A DNA stretch of 64,000 nucleotides from Kudoa neothunni (taxonomy: Eukaryota > Animalia > Cnidaria). Shown here in pieces: positions 37,892-59,807 of the stretch. The notes under the pieces were generated by a model, which was not told the origin of the DNA, did no database searches, and saw only the letters and a list, made by a program, of their open reading frames with translations. Location: NCBI GenBank assembly GCA_964304625.1, contig OZ199839.1, forward strand, positions 9,747,250-9,811,249, given 5' to 3'. Position 1 is the first letter of the stretch. Each line of letters opens with the position of its first letter. The position numbers and the translations under genes are program-made.

Positions 37892-40847
37892 ATGGTCTCA
37901 TTTAGCTTGCTTGTTGCATTATTTTGTAATAAATTAAAATTCTCGCATCTTTTGAACCATCTTAGGCATACAGAAGAATTTTGTGTTTGGGGTTCAAGAA
38001 GAGACTACACAGCCTGCCAAAGTTCTTACGTACCGCATAGCAGATAGTGACAAAGTACATCTGACTTTATCTGGATCAATTTATTCTGCCCAAGATAAAA
38101 AGTGTTTTATAAGAAAAGAAAAGGAAGGTGCAGTTGAATTTGATGATATAAATACATGTGAGGAAAATATTAGTGAGCATGGAGAAAGCAAATGCCTTCG
38201 TCCTTGTACTGGAGATATCAAATTGACATTTGATAAGCTTTCACCCAAAACAAAATATGTCTATGTATATTCTGGGGATGATGCCAACACAATTAAAACA
38301 AAGATCACTGGCGGAGATGTGTTTGGATTGTCAATTCGTAATTGTTAGTAATTTGTTTTAAAAATAATTAAATATAGCTCTCTTGGTGAATCCAATAGTC
38401 ACAATTTCTACAGACACTTCAGGGAAACTGAAACTTCTAACAAAAACATGCCCCAAAGTCGCTTGTCCCATTTATTACAATGGTGTTAAATATGCCGAAG
38501 GGCTGATCGCAACTAACTGTGTAACTGATATTAATAATACGGTTGATTTTGACGTGTTAATACCTTATTATGAAATGAAATGTGTAAATTATCCAAGCTT
38601 TTTCTACCATATGCCAAATACATACATGAGAAAAAACATTGATATATATAAACCCCCAATATTATGTGACCTATAAAGAGGGTGACAACGCAAAAACGAA
38701 ATATCTCTTAAAGTTTACAAATGCTTTCCCATCAGAAATTTGTTTTTTTAATGTGAAAGACGCAGCAACTACTTCACAGGGGAGTACAAATGATTACGAA
38801 TCATCGTGTGGTGGTGAGGCTGGAAAAAAATGTTATGCACCATGTGATAATGTTGAATTGGCGCTTGCTACATCCAAGCCGATCGTGAAAATATTAATTC
38901 AAACTAGATACCATACATTTGGAGTGGATGGAACCAGCGATGATGGTTATGAAGAGAAAAAATTTGGTAAGATTTCATTAAATTTTAAGTAATTTATGTT
39001 AATTTTAGCTGTTGTTGAGTCGGCAAGTGCAAGCACCCTATTAACAACACATACTGCTACTGGAGTAACACTTAACAGATCCCTCTATAATCCAGAGAAT
39101 AATAATAATAATGTTAAATTTACGAATTGCAACTTAAAATCCTTTCCAGCCGATTCTCCAAGACTTACAGAGGGAAGGGCAGTTAACTGCCCAAGCGATG
39201 CTTGTCAAAATGATTGTTCAGCAACCTCCATTATTGGCGGATTGACTGCAGGAAAAGCATATATAATTGAAATAGCTCCTACTACCGATTTAGATAATTA
39301 TACTGGTTTTAAAGAATATTTGTTTTTCAGAACAAGTAATTTAGCAAAGTTTACAATCATTATTACAATTTATTCTCAGCTAAAGCTAGCGCGTCAAATT
39401 ACGTTACTACCTCTCCCACAACAACCGACGTAACAGCTACATTAAAGGCAATATCCGAAGCAGTGGGATCTGATAAGAGTGAACCGACATGTGCATATTA
39501 TTTCAGTGAACAAGGGAAAGGAAAATTTGTGGAAGCAGTATGTGAAGATAGTAAACCATGCAGAGGATTTTGTAGGGACATCAAGAAATTGATAAATCTA
39601 AATCCCAAAACAAATTATGATATTAAGGTTGTTTCAAATAAATTCTATGGAATAAAAATATTTGAAAATGTCTCAACAAGTAAAAATATGATATTGAAAT
39701 CTCATTTAATTTACGGTTGATAGTTTTTTCAACCCTCACCCTATCCCACAAGTTTCTCGATAAAGGATTTCGAGTTGTTGGAAGATTAACAACTGCATAT
39801 CCAGAAGCAATATGTCATTATAAACTTAAAGTTAAAAATGGAATTAGTTCGGATGTAGTTTATTCCTGCCCAACAATTGCCCCTTCTCCTCCACAGGACA
39901 ACCCACCCAATACTAATGCTGTTCAATCTTCCACGAATAAAAATTTAGAACAATCTAATTTGATAAGTCATCTAAATTCTTACAATAATAGAGTAGCAAG
40001 AGCGAGTGGCGTAGCTGATATAACTCCAAGTTCATCTACGAACACTCCAACTATAATTTCTCCTACCACAACAACCAAGTCTAAGTTCCCACCATGCAAT
40101 AAACCACCTCTATGCAGCAGCATAATAATCAGCGAGGGTTACGAGGCTGATAAAGAATACCAATTATTGGTTACAGCTGTGGACAGATCGGAAGAAATTA
40201 CTATCAATATTCCCAAAAGTACGATATTTATTTATCAAACTATATAAAGTTCTAATATATCACACACAAATAGATGCTCTCCCTGAGAATCCTGAGGAAG
40301 TAGATAAACAAATCACAGTGATTATCGAAAGAGTTGGCGATACTTTAAAAATCACATCATTGCTTCCAAAACAAAAGAATGAAAATTCATTGTGTCGATG
40401 GATATTGAAAGATATGAACGATCCTTCTTTACCAATAGTGAAAAAGTGTGACACTGTTGGAAGTAGTAGGTGTAAACTTCCAACATGTAAATCATTCACA
40501 ATTGAGCGCGTAAGCGATACCAGTGATTATCATTTAACGGTTATTCACTCCCAAGACCCTACAATAAAAGGCGTTGGGAGAATTAAACAAGGTAGTTAAC
40601 AATAAATTATTATTATTTTAATGATCAATATAGGAGAAACTTCTAATCAATCAAAGTAAAATTGTAAAATGATAATATTAAATTTGATTTAATTTTTAGG
40701 GCGAGCACGTCAATGTATTTTTTTAATTATTTGAGTATATTTTAATGAGATACCATACATTTTAGGATAATTGGAATTATTGTTCCGATTGTTATCGTTG
40801 TAGTAGCAGTTGGATTGTACTTTGGTTACAAGAAGAATAAATCTTAG
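37892..40847 (+). CDS. Cys-rich modular type-I membrane protein, copy A (10 exons, +1 frameshift in a C5 run near 38653)
   Basis: Signal peptide MVSFSLLVALFCIQKNFVFG, nine 40-55 nt GT-AG introns, TM segment IIGIIVPIVIVVVAVGLYFGY and a KKNKS tail. One extra C relative to copies B and C. Confidence 0.8.
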
Positions 40848-41515
40848 GAATCGATCTAAACATCAGCTTATTAGTCTTAATAAAACAATATTTTTATTTT
40901 AAAAGTTTAAATTTTAACTTTTCATATACTTCATTTTTTTCAAATAAATACATTATTTATGTTCTATTTTGAGTTAATAACAAAATAAGTATTGGGATCA
41001 TCCCAACTATCTAATTCCATTTATGCTTTTAACCTATATTCTACATTTTTATGATATGAATTAATAAATTATTTTTTTATTTATATGATAGCTTTTCTGT
41101 TAATCTAAGTTAACTCTCAATTTGAAATACTAATAGCAGTTTATCAAAAATATTCCATCCAAAGCATATCCTATAAAACTGTTATAAAGGTTTTGAAAAT
41201 TAATAACCCAATTATATTTAAAAGAATTATTTAATTTACACGAGAATATTTCTCACAGTAAAAAAGTCATTAAAATATATTCCATTCACTATGGAATAAT
41301 TATAGATAATTAATATAAGATCACTATCTCCACATATTTAAAATTAATCATTTCTTGATTTATTTAATTAATTAATATACAATTCCTACATCATCCAATA
41401 TTAACTATTATCAAAATATTTTATTTATGGGCACAATAGATAAGACATTCATAGGAAACAACACAACAATAAACTATAAACTAAACGTGAAGATTTTTTG
41501 TCTTATTGTAATGAA

Positions 41516-41589
41516 TGATCGCGGGTGAGGTTCGAATCGGCGAGCCATAGCTTAAAAGGCGGTGGTGCCATATCGCTATGTTATTGATC
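41516..41589 (-). pseudogene. Degenerate tRNA-Lys(UUU)-like sequence or SINE head
   Basis: Minus strand has an anticodon-loop-like CTTTTAA and a T-loop GATTCGAACC. Acceptor stem broken. Paralogous copy at 51356-51421. Confidence 0.4.
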
Positions 41590-41634
41590 GCGCATTAGTT
41601 GACTTTGGTTTAAAACTATTATACCAACAATTAA

Positions 41635-41785
41635 CCCTTACAGGACGGTGTTCGGAAAATGTACGTATGTTCTGGTGTGGGGTCCGCGCGGACCCCAGCG
41701 GTTATTTCATTATGTAAGCGCAATTTTTATAATAACTACCATTTTATGTGATTAATATAGTGTAAAGATACGGAAACAATTATTA
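41635..41785 (+). mobile_element. Orphan piggyBac left end
   Basis: TTAA-CCCTT plus subterminal GGGGTCCGCGCGGACCCC. Homology to the copy-B flank stops exactly at this TTAA (51462-51465). Confidence 0.7.
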
Positions 41786-43917
41786 CATTCGGTGACCATT
41801 AATTCGTACTCCCCTCGGGGACGGAGAAAATTACGAATTATACGTCAGTAACGTCTAATTCGTAATGGCTTTGTGCGCGCGTGAAAAAAATAGCATGAAA
41901 ATTTTGATTTTATTAATTTTTAAGGCTTTCTAAAATAATCTGTTATTTTTGATTGTATTTGAGTTTTTCAATATACTCATACACATATGATTCTAATTTA
42001 GCTAATTCATCACCTAAAAAGTAGCACCAGCACCTTTGAAAAATATTTTCAAATTTTCTACAAAAATTATAGCATCTTTAGAAGTGAATTTAGGCTCCAC
42101 AGGTTCGTCCTCTACCTCTTCAGGCTCGCTAACGATTTCCTCGTATTAGATGTTCTCTAAATTATCACATACGGGAAACAAACTTTCTTCGATACCTAAT
42201 TCATCGACTTCTTCTAGAGATGTGGAACTATCTGGAGATAAAATTGTATTGGAATTTTCTGGTTCATTTACGGATGTTTTTAAGCCGAAACCAGATTTAG
42301 AAAAACAATTAATAATTGTTTCAGGAACTATTGAATTCCAAGTATCCTTAATAAGAGTCATTGCTTCCCATAAATCTAGAGGTTTTATATCCAGTCCTAT
42401 TTCTGCACGGAGCGTATATTGCCTCGTTAAGTTTTTCCGGTATGTTGCCTTAAATGAACGAATAACACCTTGATCCATTGGTTGTAGGACCGATGTGGTG
42501 TTTTTGGGGAAAATATACTATTTGAACGTTGGAGAGTTCCATGTGTTGATGGCAACTTGCATTGTCCATAAAAAGAACAATTTTTTGTTTCTACTTCTGA
42601 AAATACTATTAAGTTTTAACAGATAATTTCTAAAAATGCTTGTTATCATCCAGCCTTTCGTGTTGTACTCATAGGGAACTGGAGTATTATTTATACTTTT
42701 AAAGCATCTAGGTCGGGCATAATGACCTATCACTAAGAGGTCTAGCTTTTCACCATTCACTGAGGCTCCAAGTAGTAATGTAATCCTTTTTTTTGACTTT
42801 TTACCACAAGACATATTATTTTCAATAGCAGAAACGTAACTTTTTCCTATAATAATATAGATAAATACTTGAGCAAAAAGAATTGATTGTAGAATATTGT
42901 ATAATTTCGATCATAACGAAAAAATAATGAAGTACACATTTGGCGCCCACAAAATAATCATATTGTGGAAGTAATACTATTAACAAAAAATTTTTCATTT
43001 AATGTATGTAAAAATATCTGATCGAAACAAAAATAACCATTTTTAGGAAAAACTTACGAGGCGTTGATTGATGGAACAGCGCGGTCTCGTCGACATTGTA
43101 TATTTGATCCTCTTTATAATTTTCAAGAATTTTAATTAGTTGAGTCTTCCATTCTGTGATGATTCCTATGGGTACCATGTTAGCATCCCCATGAAAGCTA
43201 ACTTTTTTTAATTGAATCTATTTTTAAAGCCGCGAAACCATCCGTAGCTAACATTTTTGAAATCGTCATCAGAAGCACCGATCTCATTAATTTATTAATT
43301 ATTTCTGTAGTGAACCTAATATAATTAATCATCACCTTTATGTTATGGTCGAGGTTCGTCGTCGGTGGCGTGGTTAGTTTTGTTGAACCGTGTTTTCTAT
43401 AGCTTGTCGCTGCCGCGTTACAATTTCGATGGACGATAATTCGATACTTTTCGACCTCATCCAAATGAACCACTCATAAACACGTTGATCGACTTCATAT
43501 TTTCCTTTCCGCATTGATCTTCGTTGGGATGGAAGCAATTGATTCTCAAATGCTTGTGTAATTTTAGCACTTTTTTCTAAAATGCCATTCAATGTTGAAA
43601 TATAACCTATTTTGAAGTGTTTGATAGTTTCTGTCTTTCTATTTAAGGGCGGCAAACTATCATAATATTTAATTACGTCATATTTTTCCTGAAATGTTGT
43701 TCCGAATTTGTGAATTCTTTTTTCGGGCATTTAGAAATAATTACAAATTATCGGTTAATACACACTTTTAAAACTTTTTATTTGACAAAATAAAAAAATA
43801 ACTCGTATATTTAATTAACAACTAATAATAAACGTTATTTGACAAATGTAACCCAATGGATAGAGTTTTAAGGGATGTTACGAATTATCGGTTCTACGAA
43901 TTAACGGTCACCTACTG
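41786..43917 (-). mobile_element. pogo/Tigger transposon, full length, transposase pseudogenised
   Basis: TIR CAGTAGGTGACCGTTAATTCGTA (left copy has 3 mismatches) with TA TSD. CENP-B-type HTH region, IYNVDETALF, KKRITLLL, GWMITSIF and QPMDQGVIRSFK. Intron at 42847-43057. Confidence 0.92.
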
Positions 43918-43935
43918 TATTTGGTTAAAATTGTC

Positions 43936-46805
43936 GGTAAAGGGAGAGTACCCAGCTCCAAAAATTCGGCATCTTCCCGTACACGCGCATTGCCGATTGG
44001 TTTATAATTTAATTTAACACATTTTTAAAATATTGAGTGATCACGAATCAGACCCAAATTTTTATTTTGAAGAGTTGCAAAAAAACACTTTGGCAACAAT
44101 CGGGAAGCGCGCAATGTAATGCGCATACCTTTTCATAACCTTTTTCAGCCTAATTTGTCATAAATAATTCATGAAATTTATATTTTTAATTCTTATAATA
44201 TTATCGAATATGTTCTCGCGATTAAAGAATCACACAGGATAGGAGATATTTTATTTAGTGGTGTTTTGAATTTTCGATAATTATAGATGTAATAATAACT
44301 GTTATATTTATATCTCACGTTAAATTTAAAAATTTATGTGTTTTTATAATTTAATCCGATTAACAATAGTTTTTTCGATGGCGGAATTTTCAATTCAGCG
44401 TCAATTTTTATAAACTTTTGTTTAACGTGAGTGCTCTATTTACTTACCTAGCGAATAAGGGACTATTACAAAAAATGCCTGCTCGGTGCAAGAATTGCCA
44501 CGGGCATAACACTCTACGCCTCCAAGTTACAACGAGAAAAGAAACAATACTTCAATCGATCTTTGTGACGATGATATTGAGAAATACTCGTATACATGTT
44601 CAAAGTACTTTTATTTTATGTGTAGTTTTTAAAATATTAATTTTAGGAATGATTGTAGAACGCATTTTTCACTCAGGGCCTCTACCTTCTTTGGCATCAA
44701 TAACGCGATGGGGACGAATGTATCCAAATTAGCAGTGTCTCAGCTATTTGAGTTACTATACATTTGGTGTATTGAAGAACAAAGATGCAGGGTGGTAGTA
44801 TTAACTCAAATAACCGAGAAAATGGGCGGAGAAAATCGAATCGTCGAAATTGACGAATGTTTATTAAGAGGTCGCCGTAAAAACAACCGGGGAAGATTTT
44901 TAAGCATAGACAGATTGTTGGCCACCCCTAACTATTTCTTAAGGAGTAGGTTATTCCGTGGAGCGATTCCTTTGAGACGTCAGCGGAGAAATGAAAGGTA
45001 TGGTTACAGAATAAACGGCCCTTGGGTTGTTGGCATTTGCTAATGCTCTATCGATGAAGATGGCAAACGCAAATTGTTAGAATCAAGATTTTTTATTGTC
45101 CAAAAAAGGGATAAACGAACGTTGACCCAACTCGTCTTACAGGAAGTTGAAAACGGGATTACAATCTATACTGACGAGTGGTTGGGGTACACCTCTCTCC
45201 GAATTTACGGCTATAACCATATAACCGTTAATCACTCTAAAGAATATGTCACTCCAGAGGGTTACCATACTAATACGGTCGAGGTTGTGTGGCGTCATCT
45301 CAAAACAAAACTCATTCTGAAAATGAGCGTTGTGCCACGAAATTAGCTGGATTCCAACCTACATGAATCATGGTCGCGTTCCATTCATAAAGGATATTGG
45401 AATTTCTTCGAATATATTGTAACAGTTATCGCTACTATTTACCAATTAAATAATAGCTAATGAAACAAAATATTTGTGTTTTGATTCCTTTCATCTTTTA
45501 TATACTGCTATTTGTCAAAAAAACTTAAGAAAACTTTAGATTTTACCATATTAGTATTAACTATAAAATTAAAATTATATTTGCAGTAAATATATTTGAG
45601 ATTTCTCGCGCATTTTCGTTTAATGATAATAAATTAAAATATATGTTTATGATTTACCGCTAAGGCTTTATTAATGAAAAAATATTTTTTCTTTATAAAT
45701 GAAATTAGATTATGAAACTTTTTTTAAGAAAAACTAATTTTTAATTTTTGACTCACAATTGTTTCTCAGTCTTGATAATTAATACGATTATACAGTACAT
45801 TAACTATGAATTATAGTTATCACGGATCGTTACTCAAAGTATTCAATTATATTTGTACAAACCAACATTAAATTTTTTTTTGACTTATTTATAATCTAAT
45901 TATAAATAGTTAACGAATTATTCATTATACTGTCTGTAATATCATAAGGTTTTCAATTTCTTCAATATGGTTTGTTCGGTATACCGTTGTATATTTAATA
46001 TAAGTACATCAACAAAATATATGAACTAAAAAATGAAAACTTAAGGTTACACAACAATAAATAACTGGCATATATCCTTTCGGTTCAATTTCATTAATAA
46101 TTCACAGAACATATTTGATAATATTATAAAAATTAAAAATATAACTTTCACGAATTATTACGAAAAATATCTTGGTGAAAAACTATATCAAATAAAAACT
46201 TATAAAGAGTTCTAACGAAATCATTTTATAAAAACGTATAAAACAGCAAATTTATGGATTTCATATATAATATTAAAAGTTTATGTGAATTAATTCTTAA
46301 TTATTATGCTTTAGAAAGAATATTAATAATACATGTGATATATCTGTGGATTAGCTTATTTTAAAATTGGTTTGGAATATTAAAAATAATATATAAACTA
46401 AAAAATTTCATGATAAACGACTTTGCACAAGCAGAGAGCTAGAACAATTTGGCAGACGAAATTAATACACTTTAGTTATTTCGTGCAACTATAAACTGCT
46501 ATTTTTACTTTCTGCAACGTTCCGACTATTCATATTAAATTTAAGCAAGGCAAAAACACACTTAATCATGAGTAATTTGTTAAATTCATATGGAAAATAG
46601 AACAAAACTACCTTGCGCATTCACATGCACACGCACCGATTGAAGCCGAACGTGAATTTTAGCAAAAGTTTTAGAAGTGAATTATGAAGCGAATTGTTGT
46701 TCGGCCAAAAGTTTAAAATAGTGAATAATTGATTTGAAATAAAATCGGGATTGTCAGACATGCGTAAGAGGGTAAAAAATGGGAGCTGCACACTCCTCCA
46801 TTACC
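43936..46805 (+). mobile_element. Merlin (IS1595/ISXO2-like) transposon, decayed
   Basis: TIRs GGTAAAGGGAGAGTACCCAGCTCC and GGTAATGGAGGAGTGTGCAGCTCC. Motifs MGGENRIVEIDE, IYTDEWLGY, VNHSKEYV and HTNTVE. No TSD seen. Confidence 0.88.
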
Positions 46806-47783
46806 GTTCTTCGTAATAAAACGAGCATATATAATTTTATACGTAATTTTTTACATATTGAAATTGAATGTATAATTTGCTAGATTTAATTAATAACAAA
46901 ATCAACATTTATTTTTTAATGTAATTGTTACTTAAGACTATTAAAATCTACAGCATTATAATGACAATCAAAACGTAAAATCTATAATTTATGATGTTAG
47001 TCATTCCGAATAATTTATAATATCGACAGATAAAATATAACGAATAATTTTAGTGGGCATTTTTATTAATGTGAGTCTTCCGAAAGCCGAATTGATAAAT
47101 TTACAATCAAAATTTCAAAAAATGACCAATGTTTCAGAGAGATGATTCGATGAAAATAAAATTTAATGGGAGACAGAATTATCCAAGCAGCAAGAGTTCT
47201 TACTGATACATTAATATATTTTTTACTGTCAATATAACTCATTCCATACGAAATTTGAAAATTAGTTTCAATTGATTAACTACATTTTTTGCAACATATT
47301 TTCAAGAGAATAATAAAAAATGAATTAATTTTAACCCAGCTGCTACATTAAATACTCCGTTGATCTTGTTGATACAAAATCCAAAGTTTTCTTAGACAAA
47401 TTACTTTTATTAGTTGCTTTTTCATTATAACGACGGAGAGCCATTAGTTCAACTTTTTATTCTAATGAACTATGAGAAAAAATCTAATCAGCTCTTTTTT
47501 AACCCGTTTCAACCAGATATTGCATAAACAATTCCAAAGAAAGCCAAATGATAATTATTCCATATCTCTATTTAACATTAATTTTTTGTACAGAATTACA
47601 TTAAAAACGTGCTGAGGTAGTTTTGCAAAGATTATAAAATTCTACTAACTTTAAATTACTTAAATAATCCGATTAGTCATAATTTTTAGAGAGTATTATT
47701 TCTTTCATGAATAGTTATTGTTTATTGATACAATAAAATAAATAATCTGATATATATTCTACTTAATATAAATGAAGACAAAC

Positions 47784-50749
47784 ATGGTCTCATTTACCTT
47801 GATTGTTGCATTATTATGTAATAAATTAAAATTCTAGATTCTTTTTAAACCATTTTAGGCATTAAGGAAGTTTTTGTGCTTGGAGCCACAGGTGCGGCTA
47901 CCGAACCTGCCAAAGTTCTCACCTATCGCATAGCAGACAGTGACAAAGTACATCTGACTTTATCTGGAACAACTTATGCTACATCAGAAAAAAAATGCCT
48001 TATAAGGAAAGAAAAGGAAGATACGGTTGAATTTGACCATATAAATACATGTCCTAACAATGATAATTCACATGGGACTGGGAAATGTCTTCGTGCTTGC
48101 TCTGGAGATGATATCAAATTGTCGTTTGATAAGCTATCCCCCAGAACAAAATATGTCTATGTATATTCTGGGGATGGTGCCGACGCCATAAAAGAAAAGA
48201 TCACTGGTGGAGATGTGTTTGGATTGCCTATACGTATTCTTCGTTTATTATATATATATAATTGATTGAGTTTAGCGCTATTGGTGAATCCAATCATCAC
48301 AATATCCATACACGATTCAACTAAATTGAAACTTGCAACAAAAACATGCCCCAAAGTCACTTGTCCAATTTATTACAAAGGTGTCCAATACGTCGCCGGT
48401 ACCACTGGTGCTACTTGCGAAGCTGAAATTACAAATACAGTTGATTTTGACGTGCTGATACCTCACTATGAAATGAAATGTAAGAATTTACCAAGCTTCT
48501 TCTACCATATGCCAAATATATACATGAAAAAAAACATTGACATATATAAACCCCAATACTATGTGACCTATAAAGAGGGTGACAACGCAAAGACGAAATA
48601 TCTCTTAAAGTTTACAAATGCTTTCCCATCAGAAATTTGTTTTTTTAATGTAAAAGATGCAGCGGCTAGCGCACAGGGGAGTGCGAATACCTATTCATCA
48701 TCGTGCGGTGGTGATGCTGGAAAAAAATGTCATGCCCCATGTGATAATGTTGAATTGGAACTAGCTACATCCAAGCCGATCGTGAAAATATTAATTCAAA
48801 CTCGACATCATAGATTAGAAGTAGCAAACAATCAATACGATGGTTATGAAGAGAAAAAATTTGGTAAGATTTCAGTCAATTTTAAGTAATCATCATTGAA
48901 TTTTAGCTATTGTTGAGGCTACAAGTGCAAGCACTCTTTTAACAACACATTCTGCCACTGGAGTAACAATTAACCGATCTCTCTACAATCCAAGCAATAA
49001 TGAAAATAACGTAAAATTAGCTAATTGCGTATTAAAGTACTTTCCAGCTGATATACCAAGAACAACAGTGAGATCCGCGGCAAATTGTCAAAATACTGCG
49101 TGTCAAAATGATTGTTCAGTCAGCTCCACTATTGATGGATTGACTGCAGGAAAAGCATATATATTTGAAATAGCCCCTACTACCGATTTAGATAATTATA
49201 CTGGTTTTAAAGAATATTTGTTTTTCAGAACAAGTAATTTAGCAAAGTTTACAATCATTATTACAATTTATTCTCAGCTAAAGCTAGCGCGTCAAATTAC
49301 GTTACTACCTCTCCAACAACAACCGACGTAACAGCTACATTAAAGGCGATTGACGGTAATGTGGGAACAGCATCAACCGAACCAACATGTGCATATTATT
49401 TCAGTGAACAAGGAAAAGGAACATTTGTGGAAGCAGAATGTGAAGATAGTAAACCATGCAGAGGATTTTGTAGGGACATCAAGAAATTGATAAATCTAAA
49501 TCCCAAAACAAATTATGATATTAAGGTTGTTTCAAATAAAGACTATGGAATAAAAATATTTGAAAACGTCTCAACAAGTAAAAATATGATATTAAAATCT
49601 CATTTAATCTAATTTACGTTTGATAGCTTTTTCAACCCTCACTCTATCCCACAATTTCCTCGATAAAGGATTTCGAGTTGTTGGAAGATTAACAACTGCA
49701 TATACAGAAGCAATATGTCACTATAAACTTAAAGTTAAAAATGGAACTAGTTCAAATGTAGTTTATTCCTGCCCAACAATTGCCCCTTCTCCTCCACAGG
49801 ACAACCCACCCAATACTAATGCTGTTCAATCTTCCACGAATCAAAATTTAGAACAATCTAATTTGATCAGTCATATAAATTCTTACAATAATAGAGTTGC
49901 AAGGGCAAGTGGTGTAGCTGATTTAACTCCAAGTTCATCTACGAACACTCCAACTACGATTACTCCTACTGCGACTAATCAGTCTAAGTTCCCACCGTGC
50001 AATAAACCACCTCTATGCAGCAGCATAATAATCAGCGAGGGTTACGAGGCTGATAAAGAATACCAAGTATTGGTTACAGCTGTAGACAGATCGGAAGAAA
50101 TTACCATCAATATTCCCAAAAGTATAATATTTATTTATCAAACTATAGAAAGTTCTAATATATCACACACAAATAGATGCTCTCCCTGAGAATCCTGAGG
50201 AAGTAGATAAACAAATCACAGTGATTATCGAAAGAGTTGGCGATACTTTAAAAATCACATCATTGCTTCCAAAACAAAAAAATGAAAATTCATTGTGTCG
50301 ATGGATATTGAAAGATATGAACGATCCTTCTTTACCAATAGTGAAAAAGTGTGACACTGTTGGAAGTAGTAGGTGTAAACTTCCAACATGTAAATCATTC
50401 ACAATTGAGCGCGTAAGCGATACCAGTGATTATCATTTAACGGTTATTCACTCCCAAGACCCTACAATAAAAGGCGTTGGGAGAATTAAACAAGGTAGTT
50501 AACAATAAATTATTATTATTTTAATGATCAATATAGGAGAAACTTCTAATCAATCAAAGTAAAATTGTAAAATGATAATATTAAATTTGATTTAATTTTT
50601 AGGGCGAGCACGTCAATGTATTTTTTAATTATTTGAGTATATTTTAATGAGATACCATACATTTTAGGATAATTGGAATTATTGTTCCGATTGTTATCGT
50701 TGTAGTAGCAGTTGGATTGTACTTTGGTTACAAGAAGAATAAATCTTAG
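47784..50749 (+). CDS. Cys-rich modular type-I membrane protein, copy B (10 exons, ~850 aa, apparently intact)
   Basis: Same exon-intron structure as copy A. The spliced frame is open from ATG 47784 to TAG 50749. Confidence 0.85.
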
Positions 50750-51355
50750 GAATCGATCTAAACATCAGCTTATTAGTCTTAATAAAACAATATTTTTATT
50801 TTAAAAGTTTAAATTTTAACTTTTCATATACTTCATTTTTTTCAAATAAATACATTATTTATATTCTATTTTGATTTATATAATAACTTTTCTGTTAATC
50901 TTAGTTAACTCTCAATTTGAAATACCAACAACAGCTAATTAAAAATATTGAATGACATTTTCTATTAATATACTTACTTCGAAAAAATATTCCATCCAAA
51001 GCATTTCCTATAAAACTGTTATAAAGGTTTTGAAAATTAATAACCCAATTATATATCAATGATATATTAAAAAAATTATTTAATTTAGACATGAGAATAT
51101 TTATCACAGTAAAAAAGTCATTAAAATATATTCCATTCACTATGGAATAATTATAGATAATTAATATAAGATCACTATCTCCACATATTTAAAATTAATA
51201 ATTTTTTGATTTATTGTAATTAATAAACAATTCCTACATCATCCAATATTAACTATTATCAGAATATTTTATTTATGGGCACAATAAATAGGACATTCAT
51301 AGGAAACAAGACAATAATAAACTAAACATGAAGATTTTTGTCGTATTTTAATGAA

Positions 51356-51421
51356 TGATCGAGGGTGGGATTAGAACCGGCGACCCATAACTTAAAAGGC
51401 AATGATGCTCTGCCGCTGATC
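51356..51421 (-). pseudogene. Degenerate tRNA-like sequence, duplicate of 41516-41589
   Basis: Minus strand reads CAGCGGCAGAGCA...CCTTTTAAG...GGTTCTAATCC. Confidence 0.4.
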
Positions 51422-51931
51422 GCACATTAAACGACATTGGTTTCAACTCTTATACCAACAATTAAAGAGTTCTCTAAATCAGTGAATTGTTGTTTGGACT
51501 CTCACCAAACCCCAAGAAAAGCAACAAAATTATTAAAAATTTTGTAACTCTAGTATGTGAAAGCGAAAACCAGTGGAATAATTAATTGGTTTAATTATCG
51601 TTAATCTATTGTGGATTATATTCAAAAATAAATATTACTTTCATAAATCGCGTTTTGGTTTGGATCAAAATTTTTGATTTTGATGAGGGAAAATCATATT
51701 TAGAATAAATATATGAGGTTTAGACAATAATACAATGAATAGTAAACTAAATTAGAAAAACTATGTCTTATTTTATGTATAAATCTTTATCCGACAGATT
51801 ACAAATTTTATTTTCAGATACAAACGCACTTAATATAGGAATTTGAGAATTTTCAAAGCAAGTAACCAAAAATACATAAATGTAGAAACAAAACAGTCAA
51901 TTTAGGGTCTTGGAAATACCCCAGTCAGTAC

Positions 51932-54900
51932 TTTTTTTTTCTTTTTTTTTGTTTACAAGGTAAAACCCCTGGCGCAACTTGTTAGGTTGTGGAATTCTGG
52001 TTGGTCAGACCTTTTCCATTAGCGCTTTAGGCACCGCAGGATGTAACATGAAACCCCGCTCCTTATCTTAATGCGATAATGTGGGACTCTAACCCATTAA
52101 ATATCCTCGTCTCAGGGCGATTACCACCCCGAACCCTATCCCTATAAGGACGTCGGCTCCGTGAGGATTGCAAATTACTTGTCTTTCGATGGGTTCCGGA
52201 GATTCAAACTCCTATTCGCGCCCACCCCACTTCACAGCGAGTATACACTTTAACCCTTCCTATCCGATGTGGGGTATATTGGATACCCCAATATGATACT
52301 TTTTGTTATAATTCTTGACACCTTAACATGGATGTCACAAAACTTTTTTAATGTTTGTATAATGTATTAAAGTTTAAGAAGGATGAAAATTAAATGAATA
52401 TGGTGCAGTATATTTGTAAGAATGAGGATTTTAAAATATGTCACTTACTAATATATCCGATTTTATCACCAAATCAATATTATAATTTTTTTAATTGTTT
52501 GTATATGTTAGGGCTTGTTGGCGCTAATCCGCCGATTACGCCAAAACCTCCGAGGAGGATCAGACAAACACGTTAGTATTATCGTAGATTTGGTTCAATG
52601 AGTTTTTCTAACGGCTTTAACAGTATATGAGTTTTTATTGTTAAAATATCAATTATTTTTCTTTTAATGATAATAATGAAGTGTTACGGTTTTTACGCGC
52701 CGATAGAAGATCAACGGAAGTTAATCCATTCAGAGTTTTTGGGAAGGCACAGCTTGTTTCACTAAGTTTAATTTTTATCGATACTTGAGTATATTATTTT
52801 TTATTTATTTTTACTTATGTACATCTTTATTTAAAATGATTTTGGAAATATGTTCGACGACGCCGAAAAATTAATTGAGGATTCTTCTTCCAGACAAGAT
52901 GATTGTTCTGAGTTTATTGTATCCAAATCAGAAGACTCTTTCGACGAAAATTTTTGTGAACAAGATGGTAGTTATAGCGATGAAGAAGAATTATTGGATC
53001 ATTTGAAATATTTACCGATGAGTGAAAATTCAACATCTGTGCTTACTTCTCGATTTGGTTTCGAATGGTATACGAAACCTCCTACCAAAACGAAGACTGG
53101 TCTTCATAACTTTGTTTCGTCACCATCTGGAATTATTAATGAGGCAAAAAATGTTAACAAAATTGTTGAAGCTTTCGAGCTCTTTATATCGAATGATATT
53201 GTCAACATTATAGCCAAATATACAAATATGTACTTTGATTGTATAGACAAAACCAAAGAAAGGATAACTATAGAAGGACTCAAATCCTTTATGAGTCTAT
53301 AATTACATCCGGTCGCTCAAATGGTTCCTCGTTTGCTCTGAGGAATGTATGGGATTCCAACCCATTATTTAAACAATTCCATTTTTTCACAGCCATATCA
53401 AGGGACAGATTTACTCTCATCTATCAAACAATGAGATTCGATGATAAATCAACCAGATCTGAACGTTTCCAGAAATTAAAAGATAAGCTTGATCCATTGC
53501 ATGAAATATTACTCACCAGGTCCATATATAACGGTAGAAGAACGCCTGGTTCGTTTCAAAGGAAGATGTCCCTTCAGAGTTTTCATGAAGAGCAAACCAG
53601 GCCGTTACGGATTAAAATTTTGGGCGGCCGCTGATGTTGAAACTATAGTTATCTGTTGAACATCCATCCGTACACTGGTAAAGTAGACGGTAGCAGAGAA
53701 ATTAACCAAGGAGAACGTGTTGTCACAGACCTCGTCAAACCTTTTTTCGGAACCGGTAGAGGAGTCGCCGTGGATAATTTCTTTACTTAGATTCCGCTTG
53801 CACAGAAACTTTTACGAAACAATGTAACATTGACAGGAACGATTCGTTTCAACAAACCTGAAATTCCTAACGAATTCATGAGATCTCCAAAACGTGAAGT
53901 TTTTTCCACCTTATTTGGATTTAATGGTGATCTCACCCTAGTTTCCTACATTCCAAAAAAGAATTACGTGATGAATTTGTTGTTGAGTGAACACAATGAT
54001 ATTTCAATAGAAAATGAGGAACGGAAACGGCCTTAAATTATCCTACATTACAATGCTACAAAAGGGGGTGTCGATAATGCGGATAAGATGACTTATTCAT
54101 ATTCCTGCTCCAAGCCTACGCGTCGGTGGCCCCTTAAAATGTTCATGGATATGAATGACATCGCAGCGTTGAATGCGTATATAATCTGGACAAAAAAATC
54201 CTGAATGGCGAAAAAACGACTGGAGCAAGCGGCAACATTTTTCGCGCCAATTATCAATTGAATTGGCTGAGATCAACGTTTTTAAACGTCAAATGATGTC
54301 CAATAACTATTCGACGAAATTAAAGTACGGCTTCGAACTATTTCAAAATCAAACGAATAATGATGATACATTTATTGAACGGTTAAGCTTTAAAAATCAA
54401 TCTATGAGAAATAGATGCTATTTCTGTCCACGTAATAAAGATAAAAAATCGAATATTCCCTGCTACAATTGCAATAAATTTCTTTGTTGGAATCATAGAA
54501 AACAAAAAAAAGTTGCATATTGTTCAGATTGCTTTGAATAGAATTTATTCCGTGTTGTTACTCAATAAACCCAAATTCTTTATGTTTATGCAAAACCATT
54601 ACTATGCGATTTTAAAATGTTTCAATTATTTATATTGTAAAAATAAAATAGAATCGTAGTTTATCTAACTATCATTCGTTATTTTATAGCTTATTAAACT
54701 AAAATCTTAATTACCAAGAATGTTAAAAAATTACCGCGAACTTTCAAAAATTCACCGGTTGTTTCCGAGAAACCCCGAAATGTAATAAATGGAGAGTAAC
54801 ATCGCAGGCCAGTATCTCAATAGATAATGTGAGCACCAGCTTCTTTCGTCTTATTTTTTAATTTTAATGGTCTATTTATTGCTTATGTTTAAATTATATA

Positions 54901-55208
54901 ACATCATGGCATATTATTTTGTTATATTAGTATCGCATGATAATTTTTCTAAAACCTTATAACATCTAATTAAATTCTAGTAATAAGTTAAGAATATCAT
55001 GATTAAATTCTTTAAAATGCTTGCCTTCTAATAATGCATTAAGGGAAATTTAGCATAAGTTTATGGTCTTATTTTGCTGGGGTACGTCCCATATCCCATC
55101 GGAACGGGAGGATTTTTTTCGCGCATTACAGGGAGGGTCAACCACAGCCCCCAAATATGGGATAGAGACCCACCGACATGGAAGCAATTATCTTTCCTCG
55201 ACTTCTAA
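51932..55208 (-). mobile_element. ~390-bp retroposon (SINE or 5'-truncated non-LTR 3' end) split by a piggyBac
   Basis: Poly-T at 51932-51950 (poly-A tail on minus), GC-richer body, and a 7-bp TSD TCAGTAC at 51925-51931 and 55209-55215. B-box-like GAGTTTGAATCTCC on the minus strand. Confidence 0.65.
52254..55137 (+). mobile_element. piggyBac transposon (PGBD4-like transposase, frameshifted)
   Basis: Ends TTAA-CCCT and AGGG-TCAA. Motifs SRDRF..MRFDDK, FKGRCPFRVFMKSKPGRYGLKFW, VDNFF, GTIRFNKPEIP, YNATKGGVD and C-terminal RCYFCP..CYNCNKFLC. Confidence 0.92.
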
Positions 55209-55699
55209 TCAGTACCCGCAGGGTTAAGGAGTCGCGGTAAGAACAACTGAGTAAAATAAATTGGGAATGAACAAACGTTTCGAAATAGCACGTTAATACA
55301 CATAAAAATTTTAGTCAAATAACGTGTTTATAAACAAGATCAAAAAATAGGGCGAAACATTACAAAATACTGCAAAAATATAAAAACATAATATAATTGA
55401 AAATTATTCATAACATAATTATCCACGTATAATATATTTTCATTCATATATTTCTTGGTTCCATCATACATGTGAACACTTTAATATGTTATTTCAATTT
55501 ACTGGCAAAATTTAGTACTAAGTTTTATGAAAATAATATATAAACTAGAAAATAAATTATATTATATTACGTTGAAGTATTATTCAACTCAACTGCCAAA
55601 TATTTTTCAATAAACATAAAATTATATAGACGTAAAAATTATAAAAATTGAAGGATTTTGATGAATAATTACGTCAAACACCAGAGCGAAAATGTGTGC

Positions 55700-55887
55700 G
55701 CGCTGATATTCGCGATGGTCGATTGATGCCGAAACGTGATTTTTGGTATCATTCTAGAACTGAATTTTTAAAATTTGTTATGCTCACACGATATTTCAAA
55801 ATTATGTTAAATGATGATGTATAAGAATCGTACTTTGCGCACGCGCAAACATGCCGGCATTTTGGAGATGGATACTCCTCCATTACC
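55700..55887. mobile_element. Orphan Merlin-type terminus upstream of copy C
   Basis: Reverse complement GGTAATGGAGGAGTATCCATCTCCAAAATGCCGGCA resembles both TIRs of 43936-46805. Confidence 0.6.
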
Positions 55888-56850
55888 AAATAATTTTCTT
55901 TAATTTGTAGTTCTTCATAATAAAACGAGCATTTATAATTTAATAAATACTCATTTAGATATTGAGAGTGAATATACAATTTTCTACATTTAATTAATAA
56001 TAAAATTAACATTTATTTTCTAATGTAATCGTTACTTAAGACTATTAAAGTCTGCACCATTAAAGGGCTGTAAACAAATTAAATGAATATTTCTTGATAT
56101 TTTTATTCCAAATGACTTATAATACTAGTAGATAAAATATTACGAATAACTTTGGTGGGCATATTTATGGAAGTGATCCTCCCGAAAGCCGAGTTGATAA
56201 ATTTACAATCAAAATGTCACGAAATGACCAATGTTTCAGAGAGATGATTGGATAAAAATAAAATTTAATGGGAGCCAAAATTATCCAAGTAATAAGAGTC
56301 CTTACTGACACAAGATAATTTTTACTGTCAATATAACCCATTCCAAACGAAAGTTAAAAATTAGTTTCAATTGATTAACTACATTTTTTGCAACATATTT
56401 TCAAGAGAATAATAAAAAATGAATTAATTTTAACCCAGCTGCTACATTAAATACTCCGTTGATCTTGTTGATACAAAATCCAAAGTTTTCTTAGACAAAT
56501 TACTTTTATTAGTTGCTTTTTCATTATAACGACGGAGAGCCATTAGTTCAACTTTTTATTCTAATCAGCTCCTTTTTATCCGTTTCAGCCAGATATTACA
56601 TACACCATTCAAAAGAAAGTCAAATGATAATTATTCCATATCTTTATTTAACATTAATTTTTCGTAAAGGATTACATAAAATACATGCTGAGGTAGTCTT
56701 GTAAAGATTGTAAAATTCTAATAACTTAAATAATCCGAATAATCACAATTTTCAGATAGTATTATCTCTTTCATGAATAGTTATTGTTTATTGATACTAT
56801 AAAATAAATAATCTGTTATATATTCTATCTTAATATAAATTAAGACAAAC

Positions 56851-59807
56851 ATGGTCTCATTTAGCTTGCTTGTGGCATTATTTTGTAATAAATTAAAATT
56901 CTCGCTTCTTTTTAAACCATTTTAGGCATTAAGAAAGTTTTTGTGCTTGGAGCCACAGGTGCGGCTACCGAACCTGCCAAAGTTCTCACCTATCGCATAG
57001 CAGACAGTGACAAAGTACATCTGACTTTATCTGGAACAACATATGCCACATCGGGGAAAAAATGCCTTATAAGAAAGGAAAAGGAAAATGCAGTTGAATT
57101 TGGTGATATAAATACATGTAATGATAATGATAATTCACATGGGACTGGGAAATGTCTTCGTGCTTGCTCTGGAGAAAACATTAAATTGGATTTTAATGTG
57201 TTATCACCCAAAACAAAATATATTTATGTATATTCTGGGGGTGAATATGCAGAAATACATAATAAGAATAATGGAGGAGATGTGTTTGGATTGTCCATTC
57301 GTAATTTTTATTAATTTGTTTTTAAAAATAATTAAATATAGCTCTCTTGGTGAATCCAATAGTCACAATTTCCACAGATGAGTCAACAAAATTGAAACTT
57401 GCAACCAAAACATGTCCTAAAGTCGCTTGTCCCATTTATTACAAAGGTGTCCAATACGCCGAAGGGTCAGTCGCAGATAACTGTATAACAGAAATTACAA
57501 ATACGGTTGATTTTGATGTGCTGATACCACACTATGAAATGAAATGTATGAATTTACCAAGCTTCTTCTACAATATGCCAAATACATACATGAAAAAAAA
57601 CATTGATATATATAAACCCCAATATTACGTGACCTATAAAGAGGGGGACGACGCAACGACAAAATATCTCTTAAAGTTTACAAATGCTTTCCCATCAGAA
57701 ATTTGTTTTTTTAATGTAAAAGATGCAACAACTACCACACAAGGGAGTACGAATACCTACGTATCATCATGTGGTGGTGGAGCCGGAAAAAACTGTTACG
57801 CTCCATGTAATAATGTGGAATTGAAATTTTCTACTTCCAAACCAATATTAAAAATATTAATTAAAACTCGGCGCCATAAATTAGAAGTCGATGGAACCGA
57901 CGTTGAAGGTTATGAAGAGAACAAATTTGGTAATATTTCATTAAATTCAAGGTAATCGCCATTGAATTTTAGCTATTATTGAGCCAATAAATGCAAGCAC
58001 CCTTTTAACAGCACATTCTGCTACAGGAATAACACTCAATCCGTCACCGTACAATCCCACACGAGACGATAGTGTGAAATTTACTACTTGTACTTTAAAA
58101 CATTTTCCAGCCGATAAGCTGAGACCCAGCGATGGGACTGCTGCTCAGTGCGCAAACGTGCCATGTGGAACTGACTGTTCACAGAACTCTGTCCTTAGTC
58201 AGCTGGACGCAGGTAAAGCATATATAATTGAAATAGCTCCATCAACAACATTAAATACTCCCAACAACTTTAAAGAATATTTATTCTTTAGAACAGGTAA
58301 TGTAACAAAGTGTATTACAATTATGATTATTTAAATTTATTTTCAGCTAAAGCTAGCGCGTCAAATTACGTTACTACCATTCCCACAACGACCGACGTAA
58401 CAGCTACATTAAAGGCAGTTGACGGTGATGTGGAAAATAAACCGGCTGAACCAACATGTGAATATTACATCAGTAAAGCAGGTAAAAACATGTTTGTAGA
58501 AGCAGAATGTGGAGATAGTTATCCATGCAGAGGATTTTGTAAGGACACCAAGAAATTGATAAATTTAAGGCTTAAAACAAATTATGATATCAAAGTTGTT
58601 TCAAATAAAGATTATGGAATAAAAATATTTGAAAACGTCTCAACAAGTAAAAATATGATATCGAAATCACATTTAATTTACGTTTAATAGCTTTTTCAAC
58701 CCTCACTCTATCCCACAATTTTCTCGATAAAGGATTTCGAGTTGTTGGAAGATTAATAACTGCATATCCAGAAGCAATATGTCACTATAAACTTAAAGTT
58801 AAAAATGGAACTAGTTCAGATGTAGTTTATTCCTGCCCAACAATTGCTCCTTCTCCTCCACAAGCCAACCCACCCAATACTAATGCTGTTCAATCTTCCA
58901 CGAATCAAAATTTAGAACAATCTAATTTGATCAGTCATATAAATTCTTCCAATAATAGAGTAGCAAGAGCGAGTGGCGCAGCTGTTATAACTCCAAATTC
59001 ATCCGCCACCATTCCAACTACGATTACTCCTACTGCGACTAATCAATCTAAGTTTCCACCATGCAATAAACCACCTCTATGCAACAACATAATAATCAGC
59101 GAGGGTTACGAGGCTGATAAAGAATACCAATTATTGGTTACAGCTGTGGACAGATCGGAAGAAATTACCATCAATATTCCCAAAAGTACAATATTTATTT
59201 ACCAAATTATAAAAAGTTCTAATATATCACTCACAAATAGATGCTCTCCCTGAGAATCCTGAGGAAGTAGATAAACAAATCACAGTGATTATCGAAAGAG
59301 CTGGCGATACTTTAAAAATCACATCATTGCTTCCAAAACAAAAAAATGAAAATTCATTGTGTCGATGGATATTGAAAGATATGAACGATCCTTCTTTACC
59401 AATAGTGAAAAAATGTGACACTGTTGGAAGTAGTAGGTGTGCACTTCCAACATGTAAATCATTCACAATTGAGGGCGTAAGCGATACCAGTGATTATCAT
59501 TTAACGGTTATTCACTCCCAAGACCCTACAATAAAAGGCGTTGGAAGAATTAAACAAGGTAGTTAACAATAAATTATTATTATTTTAATGATCAATATAG
59601 GAGAAACTTCTAATCAATCAAAGTAAAATTGTAAAATGATAATATTAAATATGATTAATTTTTAGGGCGAGCACGTCAATGTATTTTTTAGTTATTTGAG
59701 TATATTTGAATGAGATACCATTTAGGATAATTGGAATTATTGTTCCGATTGCTATCGTTGTAGTGGCGGCTGGATTGTACTTTGGTTACAAGAAGAACAA
59801 ATCATAA
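56851..59807 (+). CDS. Cys-rich modular type-I membrane protein, copy C (10 exons, apparently intact)
   Basis: Same structure as copies A and B, from ATG 56851 to TAA 59807. Confidence 0.85.

Follow-up and report, generated by a model that had tools for sequence, protein, structure and literature searches.

A tandem array of predicted surface-protein genes with FN3-like modules in Kudoa neothunni, with patchwork 5' halves and near-identical 3' halves

The locus and its genes

Myxozoans are economically important parasites of fish that persist in immune-competent hosts by means not yet understood. The stretch of DNA described here (the window) comprises 64,000 nucleotides of contig OZ199839.1 of the myxozoan Kudoa neothunni (assembly GCA_964304625.1, positions 9,747,250 to 9,811,249, forward strand), with a GC content of about 29%. 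Segment 37892–59807 of the window extends exactly from the start codon of the first to the stop codon of the third of three paralogous genes. Each encodes a predicted type I membrane glycoprotein, and all three belong to a large family that is orphan by sequence and whose modules resemble fibronectin type III (FN3) domains in their modelled fold. The array in which they lie illustrates cleanly how concerted evolution can act on half a gene and leave old diversity in the other half. As regards anatomy and evolutionary mechanism, the probable reading is an FN3-like family of surface type that has been diversified by recombination.

The three genes were recovered by a repeat search as direct repeats of about 3 kb on the same strand, at spacings of 9.9 and 9.06 kb (table 1). 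They are members 1–3 of a head-to-tail array of 11 copies, so that the tandem arrangement proposed in an earlier note on this DNA, made from the sequence alone, holds and continues past the end of the window. The unit between adjacent array copies is about 4.4–4.5 kb, and the spacers inside the window measure 6–7 kb. The array lies 2.2 Mb from the sole telomere present in the assembly.

Copy 2 provides the reference gene model. Its splice sites and phases were derived by hand, and the model was projected onto the exons of the other copies through a MAFFT alignment of 13 sequences from the same genome: the three window copies, the eight further array copies and two outlying paralogs. Introns in the array are 40–55 nt long (41–55 nt and all GT–AG in copy 2). 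Introns 1–7 of copy 2 are all of phase 1, and their positions are kept in the 13 paralogs. The GT and AG dinucleotides are retained at every site in 13 of 13, and exon lengths differ by multiples of three except in exon 3 of copy 1 and in the outlier on chromosome 3. Ten of the 11 array copies are intact, with about 850 open codons and all splice sites present.

The earlier note had described three 10-exon paralogs of about 850 amino acids. Copies 2 (851 residues) and 3 (850 residues) fit that description; copy 1 has the same 10 exons and, as assembled, a frame break in exon 3. This exon measures 589 nt, and 11 stops follow in the expected frame downstream of a run of five C residues, where the other 12 paralogs have four bases. 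The frames of copy 1 outside exon 3 are clean. The break is a lesion of very recent origin or else a homopolymer error of the assembly, and the latter is allowed for because the HiFi reads behind the assembly have a k-mer coverage of about 7 (PMC12239612). An intron that would rescue the exon was considered and rejected: the candidate GT/AG pair is out of phase, and the corresponding stretch is read without interruption in copies 2 and 3.

Three irregularities were seen among the other family members. Copy 5 has GTG where the alignment places the ATG start codon (L002:230-232). The outlying paralog o13 on chromosome 3 (L010, G000:C3:182290-185990) has exons 3 and 6 off frame (590 and 494 nt), and its projected frames contain stops. 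A pseudogene is the probable reading, though projection of the exon boundaries could contribute to this appearance. A twelfth match to the motif of the transmembrane (TM) segment occurs inside the array between copies 9 and 10 (G000:C2:9857262-9857279), with no listed module 1 or module 7 match nearby. It is probably a truncated copy.

Anatomy of the predicted protein

The predicted protein opens with a hydrophobic N-terminus (exon 1 and the start of exon 2), continues through seven modules (exons 2–7) and the micro-exons, and closes with a TM segment and a tail of five residues. The signal peptide and the TM segment were called from hydrophobicity alone. The signal peptide, single TM segment and five-residue tail described in the earlier note are all recovered, as a hydrophobic N-terminus, a hydrophobic segment of 21 residues and the tail KKNKS. 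Four cysteines stand in every module, giving 28 in total; in copy 2 these are 28 of 843 residues counted, or 3.3%. The cysteines are invariant in the 11 array copies, and also in diverse paralog modules (23 for module 7 and 31 for module 1). Their spacings are of the CX3C and CX4C type, and no CXXC occurs among those seen.

Module 6 is interrupted by a mucin-like insert that contains the motif RVAR, a dibasic-type convertase pattern. The motif is invariant in the 11 array copies, and paralog o12 has RVVR in its place. Cleavage there could leave two chains joined, if the flanking cysteines of module 6 form a disulfide. The layout as a whole is the predicted architecture of a cell-surface glycoprotein: a secretory start is followed by modules stapled with disulfides, one of which has a mucin-like insert, and a lone TM segment precedes a minimal tail.

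Fold and kinship of the modules

Searches and structure predictions were run exon by exon. The earlier note had not recognized the family, and by sequence it is indeed an orphan. Pfam returned nothing for copy 1, the copy searched; the fn3 family (PF00041) matches none of its seven module exons at E ≤ 1. Profile searches of Protein Data Bank (PDB) sequences found nothing related, and ESM Atlas features gave no annotation (best 0.77). An exhaustive profile search of 1.84 billion representative sequences matched 24 proteins only beyond this genome, most of them fragments of 77–208 residues.

The modelled structures are more informative. An AlphaFold2 model of module 7, based on an alignment of 23 paralogs, is a seven-strand sandwich with a predicted local distance difference test score (pLDDT) of 89.9. 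A structural search of representatives with VIA returned mostly FN3-type domains (Z 7.8–8.9; root-mean-square deviation 2.2–3.1 Å over 80–90 of 105 residues), among them domains of integrin beta4, fibronectin, tenascin, CD45 (domains 3 and 4) and receptor phosphatases. The best Foldseek match is an FnIII domain of integrin beta4 at a TM-score of 0.62, and a shape search of the ESM Atlas agrees. The model of module 1 is a beta sandwich of lower confidence (pLDDT 75.9), with weak matches to FN3 domains and cytokine receptors (E 0.02–0.1). At the level of single residues, module 1 carries the FN3-type pattern L-x-P-x-T-x-Y before strand F, and module 7 has an invariant Trp and an invariant Tyr. 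The module 7 profile also matches two FN3 repeat proteins that have Pfam fn3 domains, one from Argonauta hians and one of 3230 residues, with E values of 7e-10 and 4e-12 that are each the sum of several matching stretches. A direct comparison of the profile with the A. hians protein in hhalign is weak (probability 6%). Close kinship and contamination were both rejected for that protein, which is encoded on a 14-Mb contig and is an FN3 repeat protein of the ordinary kind. The models thus point to modules that are FN3-like by fold, and homology to FN3 is likely.

Concerted evolution and recombination within the array

Divergence declines steeply along the gene. Between the three window copies it amounts to 20% in exon 2, 16% in exon 3, 29% in exon 4, 13% in exon 5, 6.5% in exon 6 and 1.5% in exon 7. 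Introns 7–9 differ by 0–5%, the first 100 nt of the 3' flank by 7% and the flank beyond by 37%. These values bear out the remark in the earlier note that the genes are almost identical from exon 7 through the 3' flank, introns included. The same gradient is found across all 11 copies. The mean p-distance of exon 4 is 0.247 (maximum 0.364); introns 1–4 diverge by 0.20–0.29, introns 5–9 by 0–0.09, and the flank past about +100 nt by 0.35. Exon 6 and all that follows it, introns included, up to about 100 nt beyond the stop codon make up the 3' half of the array genes, which is kept near-identical.

The earlier note had called the membrane-proximal end frozen. Its near-identity stands; stronger constraint alone is not the cause. 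With the 11 copies pooled, synonymous divergence is 0.32–0.42 in exons 2–4 and drops to 0.22, 0.10 and 0.05 in exons 5, 6 and 7, and intron divergence falls with it. The ratio of non-synonymous to synonymous divergence (dN/dS) stays flat over the same exons (0.44, 0.27, 0.37, 0.45, 0.34 and 0.34 for exons 2–7). The gradient therefore appears to reflect history, and not protein constraint alone.

Pairs of copies show abrupt changes of relationship along the gene. Copies 3 and 7 differ at 116 of 324 positions in exon 4 and at 1 of 300 in exon 5, a fall from 36% to 0.3% (Fisher p 4e-37). Copies 1 and 6 differ at 52 of 300 positions in exon 5 and at 1 of 495 in exon 6. The reverse pattern is seen for copies 4 and 10, with 2 differences in 375 positions of exon 2 and 60 in 300 of exon 5. 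Copy 8 (L005, G000:C2:9842500-9846200) is a hybrid: its 5' 2761 nt equal copy 9 and its 3' 978 nt equal copy 7, with the junction inside exon 7. Such a gene is the product expected of an unequal crossover between copies 7 and 9. The largest distances within the array, 0.27 for exon 2 and 0.36 for exon 4, equal the distance to paralogs at other loci. In exons 6 and 7, distances within the array are four to eight times smaller than those to the outlying paralogs. These patterns show an array that evolves by unequal crossover and segmental gene conversion. Its 5' half is a patchwork of old sequence types, some of them as divergent as paralogs elsewhere in the genome.

The region at the very 5' end occurs in two forms. 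Each cassette takes in 220 nt of the flank and runs through exon 1 and intron 1 into the first codons of exon 2, and the two types are 41–44% apart. Type A is found in copies 1–5, 7 and 10, and hence in all three window copies; type B is found in copies 6, 8, 9 and 11. Where copies are only about 4.4–4.5 kb apart, the downstream one has a cassette of type B. The cassette comprises promoter and signal peptide.

Variable loops and tests of selection

Copy 1 exon 3 was excluded from the codon analyses, codons split by introns were dropped, and dN/dS was calculated for each exon. Site models M1a and M2a were run in our own implementation, on fixed trees and recombining sequences. The two loop examples of the earlier note, one in module 1 and one in module 4, occur in the sequence letter for letter. 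Its observation that differences concentrate in loops between invariant cysteines was likewise confirmed. In module 1, sites with at least four residues among the 11 copies are 65, 66, 70 and 73; 88 and 91; and 105, 106, 108 and 112, all of them in loops or at a loop edge. The first four lie in the Cys64–Cys76 loop and show five different residues each. The last four lie in the F–G loop, with four to six residues. Enrichment of sites with at least three residues outside the strands of module 1 is not significant (Fisher p=0.14). By FN3 topology, the C'–E and F–G loops of module 1 would lie at the N-terminal pole, which is the predicted tip of the molecule. The structural mapping foreseen in the earlier note yields an FN3-like fold with the variable sites in loops; their exposure is judged from secondary structure and FN3 topology.

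Rates of change separate scaffold from loops. The ratio of non-synonymous to synonymous differences per site (pN/pS) is 0.29 in the strands of module 1 and 0.53 outside them. It reaches 0.99 in the Cys loop (confidence interval (CI) 0.47–2.3) and 0.70 in the F–G loop. No window of 15 codons in exons 2–4 exceeds 0.92. When sites were classified from the distant paralogs, conserved sites gave a pN/pS of 0.16 (CI 0.11–0.22) and variable sites 0.76 (CI 0.62–0.94). Maximum-likelihood omega (GY94) for exons 2–5 is 0.28–0.34. The scaffold is under strong purifying selection (pN/pS about 0.16). About one third of sites, in loops comparable to complementarity-determining regions (such as C'–E and F–G of module 1), evolve near neutrality.

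The comparison of M1a with M2a favours a class of sites with omega above 1 in exon 2 (likelihood ratio test (LRT) 11.98, p 0.0025; 6% of sites at omega 3.6). Sites 65, 70 and 73 of module 1 have posteriors above 0.85. The LRT is 6.28 (p 0.043) for exon 3 and 4.31 (p 0.12) for exon 5. It is 0.00 (p 1) for exon 4, where 37% of sites are neutral and no class has omega above 1. Recombination is known to inflate tests of this kind. With segment-specific trees the exon 2 signal weakens to p=0.05 or 0.27, and a two-site signal is obtained in residues 1–90 of exon 3 (p=0.007). The earlier note had proposed diversifying selection on the loops, and had itself regarded windowed dN/dS at or below neutrality as evidence to the contrary. 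The loops as a class do lie at or below neutral: variable sites stand at 0.76, the Cys loop at 0.99 and the exon 4 LRT at 0. A signal appears only in exon 2 and at the two sites in exon 3. There is at most a hint of positive selection, at a few borderline sites and confounded by recombination.

Size and range of the family

The count of paralogs, suggested in the earlier note, places the array in a large family. With module 7 as query, a search of the genome gave at least 150 matches (the best 150 of 305 candidates), all at E ≤ 1e-17, and only 3 of these best 150 contain stops. Module 1 likewise gave at least 150 matches (the best 150 of 259 candidates). They are found on all three chromosomes, mostly in clusters on one strand. 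The back-translated TM motif has 106 matches in the genome, and the control pattern has 2. In five distant members, spread over all three chromosomes, the exon order is the same and the protein ends in a TM segment with a basic tail of four or five residues. Across them, conservation is lowest in modules 1 (31–51% identity) and 4 (33–46%) and highest in exon 3 and in modules 5 and 7.

The outside relatives that were examined come from ENA/Logan contigs. Relatives appear to exist in other AT-rich organisms, because two such contigs, of 33% and 24% GC, carry modules in the same order at 51% and 32–36% identity. A search of the literature on FN3-like, multigene or variant surface families of Kudoa and myxozoans found no description of the present family. 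The genome paper makes no mention of gene families, paralogs or surface proteins (PMC12239612). Its gene prediction relied on protein hints only and gave 5,316 genes, with 45.6% of the genome annotated as repeats, and there were almost no RNA reads of the parasite (PMC12239612). A family of at least 150 intact spliced genes would equal about 3% or more of the published gene count. It may have been overlooked in that annotation or masked as repeats.

Neighbouring features and genome context

The features of the locus are collected in table 1. Fragments of three kinds of transposase lie in the spacers. Upstream of the array are three intronless genes of the HSP20/alpha-crystallin type. Their closest public proteins, at 72–73% identity, are labelled Salmo salar and have names derived from C. 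elegans; the Salmo salar-labelled proteins look like Kudoa-type contaminants in salmon cDNA sets.

The assembly consists of contigs of 17.15, 12.04 and 11.05 Mb and one of 18,219 bp. The last (G000:C4) has 44% GC and highly divergent open reading frames in which TGA must be read as Trp; no tRNA genes and no Rfam rRNA match were found in it, and it is taken to be the mitochondrial genome. (TAAACC)n is found at one contig end only, in the last 530 bases at the right end of chromosome 2 (G000:C2:12039536-12040069). These observations agree with the published description, according to which the genome has 30.4% GC and forms three chromosome scaffolds beside a circular mitochondrial genome, the median intron length is 49 bp, and (TAAACC)n is confined to one chromosome end (Weber, Paulini and Blaxter, PMC12239612).

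Table 1. Features of the locus, in window coordinates. TM, transmembrane.
Feature	Position	Strand	Remarks
HSP20/alpha-crystallin genes	11952-12647, 20702-21397, 35614-36195	+	intronless
Copy 1	37892..40847	+	first array gene; projection of the copy 2 model; frame broken in exon 3 as assembled
Copy 1 exons	37892-37925, 37966-38337, 38378-38966, 39009-39335, 39380-39679, 39724-40218, 40274-40591, 40634-40655, 40700-40714, 40766-40847	+	all GT/AG
C5 run, copy 1 exon 3	38653..38657	+	four bases in the other 12 paralogs; site of the frame break
Broken pogo/Tigger-type transposase (CENP-B_N + DDE_1)	42146..43730	-	copy 1–copy 2 spacer
Fragmented ISXO2-like (DDE_Tnp_IS1595) transposase	44418..45346	+	copy 1–copy 2 spacer
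5' cassette, copy 2	47564-47900		type A
Copy 2	47784..50749	+	intact, 851 codons; no stops in any exon frame
Copy 2 exons	47784-47817, 47859-48233, 48276-48863, 48907-49233, 49278-49577, 49627-50121, 50177-50494, 50537-50558, 50603-50617, 50668-50749	+	
Copy 2 exon 1	47784..47817	+	start codon, hydrophobic core of signal peptide; type A cassette
Copy 2 exon 2, module 1	47859..48233	+	124 residues, Cys 46/64/76/80; bounded by phase-1 introns
Module 1 Cys64–Cys76 hypervariable loop	48050..48088	+	between strands C' and E; first example of the earlier note
Module 1 F–G loop	48173..48211	+	second variable patch
Copy 2 exon 3, modules 2 and 3	48276..48863	+	both in one exon, 8 Cys
Copy 2 exon 4, module 4	48907..49233	+	most divergent module, in the array and across the family
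Module 4 variable stretch	49050..49103	+	second example of the earlier note
Copy 2 exon 5, module 5	49278..49577	+	
Homogenized 3' block, copy 2	49578..50849	+	intron 5 to about 100 nt past stop; mean p-distance 0–0.09 vs 0.16–0.29 upstream (11 copies, introns included)
Equivalent homogenized blocks	~39680-40950 (copy 1), ~58647-59910 (copy 3)	+	
Copy 2 exon 6, module 6	49627..50121	+	insert between its Cys 2 and Cys 3
Ser/Thr/Pro/Asn-rich mucin-like insert, module 6	49770..50000	+	75 residues, between Cys 2 and 3; holds RVAR
RVAR motif	39990-40001 (copy 1), 49893-49904 (copy 2), 58957-58968 (copy 3)		
Copy 2 exon 7, module 7	50177..50494	+	membrane-proximal, predicted FN3 fold
Copy 2 exon 8	50537..50558	+	22-nt micro-exon; required by frame arithmetic to keep exon 7 and the TM exon in frame; divergence 0% among the 11 copies
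Copy 2 exon 9	50603..50617	+	15-nt micro-exon, frame-neutral; predicted to be included, from its conservation
Copy 2 exon 10	50668..50749	+	TM 50669-50731 (21 residues), tail KKNKS 50732-50746, stop codon
piggyBac-like (DDE_Tnp_1_7) fragment	52850..53634	+	copy 2–copy 3 spacer; Pfam E 7.5e-5, barely past cut-off
Copy 3	56851..59807	+	intact, 850 codons (850 residues)
Copy 3 exons	56851-56884, 56926-57300, 57342-57929, 57973-58296, 58347-58646, 58691-59185, 59241-59558, 59601-59622, 59666-59680, 59726-59807	+	

Possible functions

The family offers concrete candidates for the surface coat of the parasite. As members of an FN3-like surface-type family diversified by recombination, the proteins would form a variable outer coat or an adhesion or recognition layer, to which recombination between paralogs would supply new combinations of loops. 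Conserved frames, the size of the family and purifying selection on the scaffold argue that the family is used. Several points weigh against this account. Splicing, above all of the two micro-exons, expression and surface location are predictions from sequence, and the signal peptide and TM segment are hydrophobicity calls. Since Pfam fn3 is unmatched and hhalign gives 6%, the modules share the FN3 fold and their homology to FN3 is not established. The selection tests carry the limits of our own M1a/M2a code, of fixed trees and of recombining sequences. Some true gradient of constraint also exists, as distant arrays resemble each other more closely in module 7 than in modules 1 and 4.

Several narrower roles can be weighed against the same observations. 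A structural or adhesive coat, serving as glycocalyx, in the spore or in cell–cell adhesion, is possible, although we would not favour it outright. Here copy number would matter, through dosage or stage-specific paralogs, and loop variation would be neutral drift on an FN3 scaffold. FN3 loops generally tolerate substitution, as monobody engineering illustrates, and the data agree in that omega is near but below 1 at variable sites and 0.16 at scaffold sites and that dN/dS is flat along the gene; the mucin-like insert also suggests a role in a glycocalyx. Drift accounts less readily for the old types kept in modules 1 and 4 despite conversion elsewhere, which is easier to understand if diversity is favoured or conversion selected against, or for the clustering of the hottest sites at one pole of module 1. 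True antigenic variation is somewhat less likely than a coat of this kind. One or a few paralogs would be expressed at a time, host antibody would select the loops, and mosaic conversion would make the variants. The large arrayed repertoire, the mosaic structure of the copies and the two divergent 5' cassettes are consistent with such a system, as are the most variable module 1 sites, which by FN3 topology fall in loops at the membrane-distal tip, and the preference of M2a for a class with omega above 1 in exon 2 and in the first 90 residues of exon 3. A preprint states that the phenomenon is seen in myxozoans including Kudoa thyrsites, its mechanism being unknown (10.64898/2026.02.11.705288). 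However, variable sites as a class stay below 1, exon 4 gives no signal at all, and the exon 2 signal fades with segment trees in a test that recombination inflates. Moreover, Kudoa plasmodia grow within muscle fibres, where antibody pressure may be low. A full version of this scheme is slightly more doubtful again. In it, the family would be the basis of myxozoan antigenic variation: from a repertoire of at least 150 FN3-like coat proteins, renewed by mosaic conversion, a single plasmodium would express one or a few, chosen through the 5' cassettes. If true, it would be the first such system described in an animal parasite, to our knowledge, and its extracellular modules would be of animal type and not a loan from protists.

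Self/non-self or cell–cell recognition among parasite cells is improbable. The variable distal modules would bind homophilically, after the manner of the allorecognition receptors (Alr) of Hydractinia. The organism is a cnidarian, and clustered genes, variable distal modules and recombination among paralogs are all in keeping with such a role. Yet the modelled fold is FN3 and not V-set or I-set immunoglobulin (Ig), a tail of five residues leaves no room for signalling motifs, and at least 150 paralogs compare with the few tens of Alr genes, in which the variation is allelic. The idea that the genes are non-functional repeated DNA, either decaying pseudogenes or transposon cargo, can be nearly dismissed. 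It could draw on the frame break of copy 1, the off-frame exons 3 and 6 of o13, the transposon fragments in the spacers and the large annotated repeat content of the genome (45.6%; PMC12239612). Against it, 10 of the 11 array copies keep about 850 open codons and all splice sites, omega is 0.28–0.34 in exons 2–5 and 0.16 at the scaffold, and stops occur in only 3 of the best 150 module 7 matches.

Comparison with known systems

The likeness to variant antigens or to Alr that the earlier note had drawn is an analogy. The Alr proteins of Hydractinia come from a cnidarian as well, and are clustered type I membrane proteins with variable distal domains. Unlike the Kudoa proteins, with their predicted FN3 fold and five-residue tail, they have Ig-like domains (V-set or I-set) and long signalling tails. 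No sequence link to Alr was found in the profile search of 1.84 billion representatives or in PDB sequence profiles.

The closest structural parallels are FN3 ectodomains such as those of CD45, DEP-1, LAR and PTP-delta. Shared features are the seven-strand sandwich, nearly all top VIA matches being FN3-type and including domains 3 and 4 of CD45, the L-x-P-x-T-x-Y pattern of module 1 and the invariant Trp and Tyr of module 7. Module exons with phase-1 boundaries are a further likeness, such boundaries being usual for shuffled extracellular modules of metazoans. CD45 and the receptor tyrosine phosphatases, moreover, have Cys-bearing FN3-like domains associated with mucin regions. The Kudoa exons differ in that they lack a Pfam fn3 match, and the modules in that they hold four invariant cysteines and a C'–E loop closed by cysteines. 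The cytoplasmic part of the Kudoa proteins amounts to five residues, with no phosphatase or kinase domain, and the family comprises at least 150 tandemly arrayed paralogs.

Parasite variant families, such as the VSPs of Giardia, var, rif and stevor of Plasmodium and msg of Pneumocystis, offer a parallel in organization. They too combine a large arrayed repertoire of surface type with mosaics of paralogs, and in them too the outer parts vary and the membrane-proximal end is conserved. A tail of five residues closes the VSPs of Giardia as well. Fold and sequence are different, Kudoa is an animal, and the array lies 2.2 Mb from the sole telomere in the assembly. Typical of VSPs in particular are a Cys content above 10%, numerous CXXC motifs and a conserved signature at the C-terminus, in contrast to the 3.3% Cys, CX3C and CX4C spacings and KKNKS tail of the Kudoa proteins.

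Within the myxozoans, a literature search found no paper that pairs the group with FN3. The nearest comparison is provided by Sphaerospora molnari, in which VSP-like, RIFIN/STEVOR-like and ETRAMP-like families of 10–27 genes, similar to protist proteins, have been reported; the VSP-like proteins have more than 10% Cys (10.64898/2026.02.11.705288). These are duplicated membrane proteins of a myxozoan, as the Kudoa proteins are predicted to be, and were proposed there to serve immune evasion (10.64898/2026.02.11.705288). The Kudoa family differs from them in its FN3-like modules, its size of at least 150 genes and its phase-1 module exons of metazoan style.

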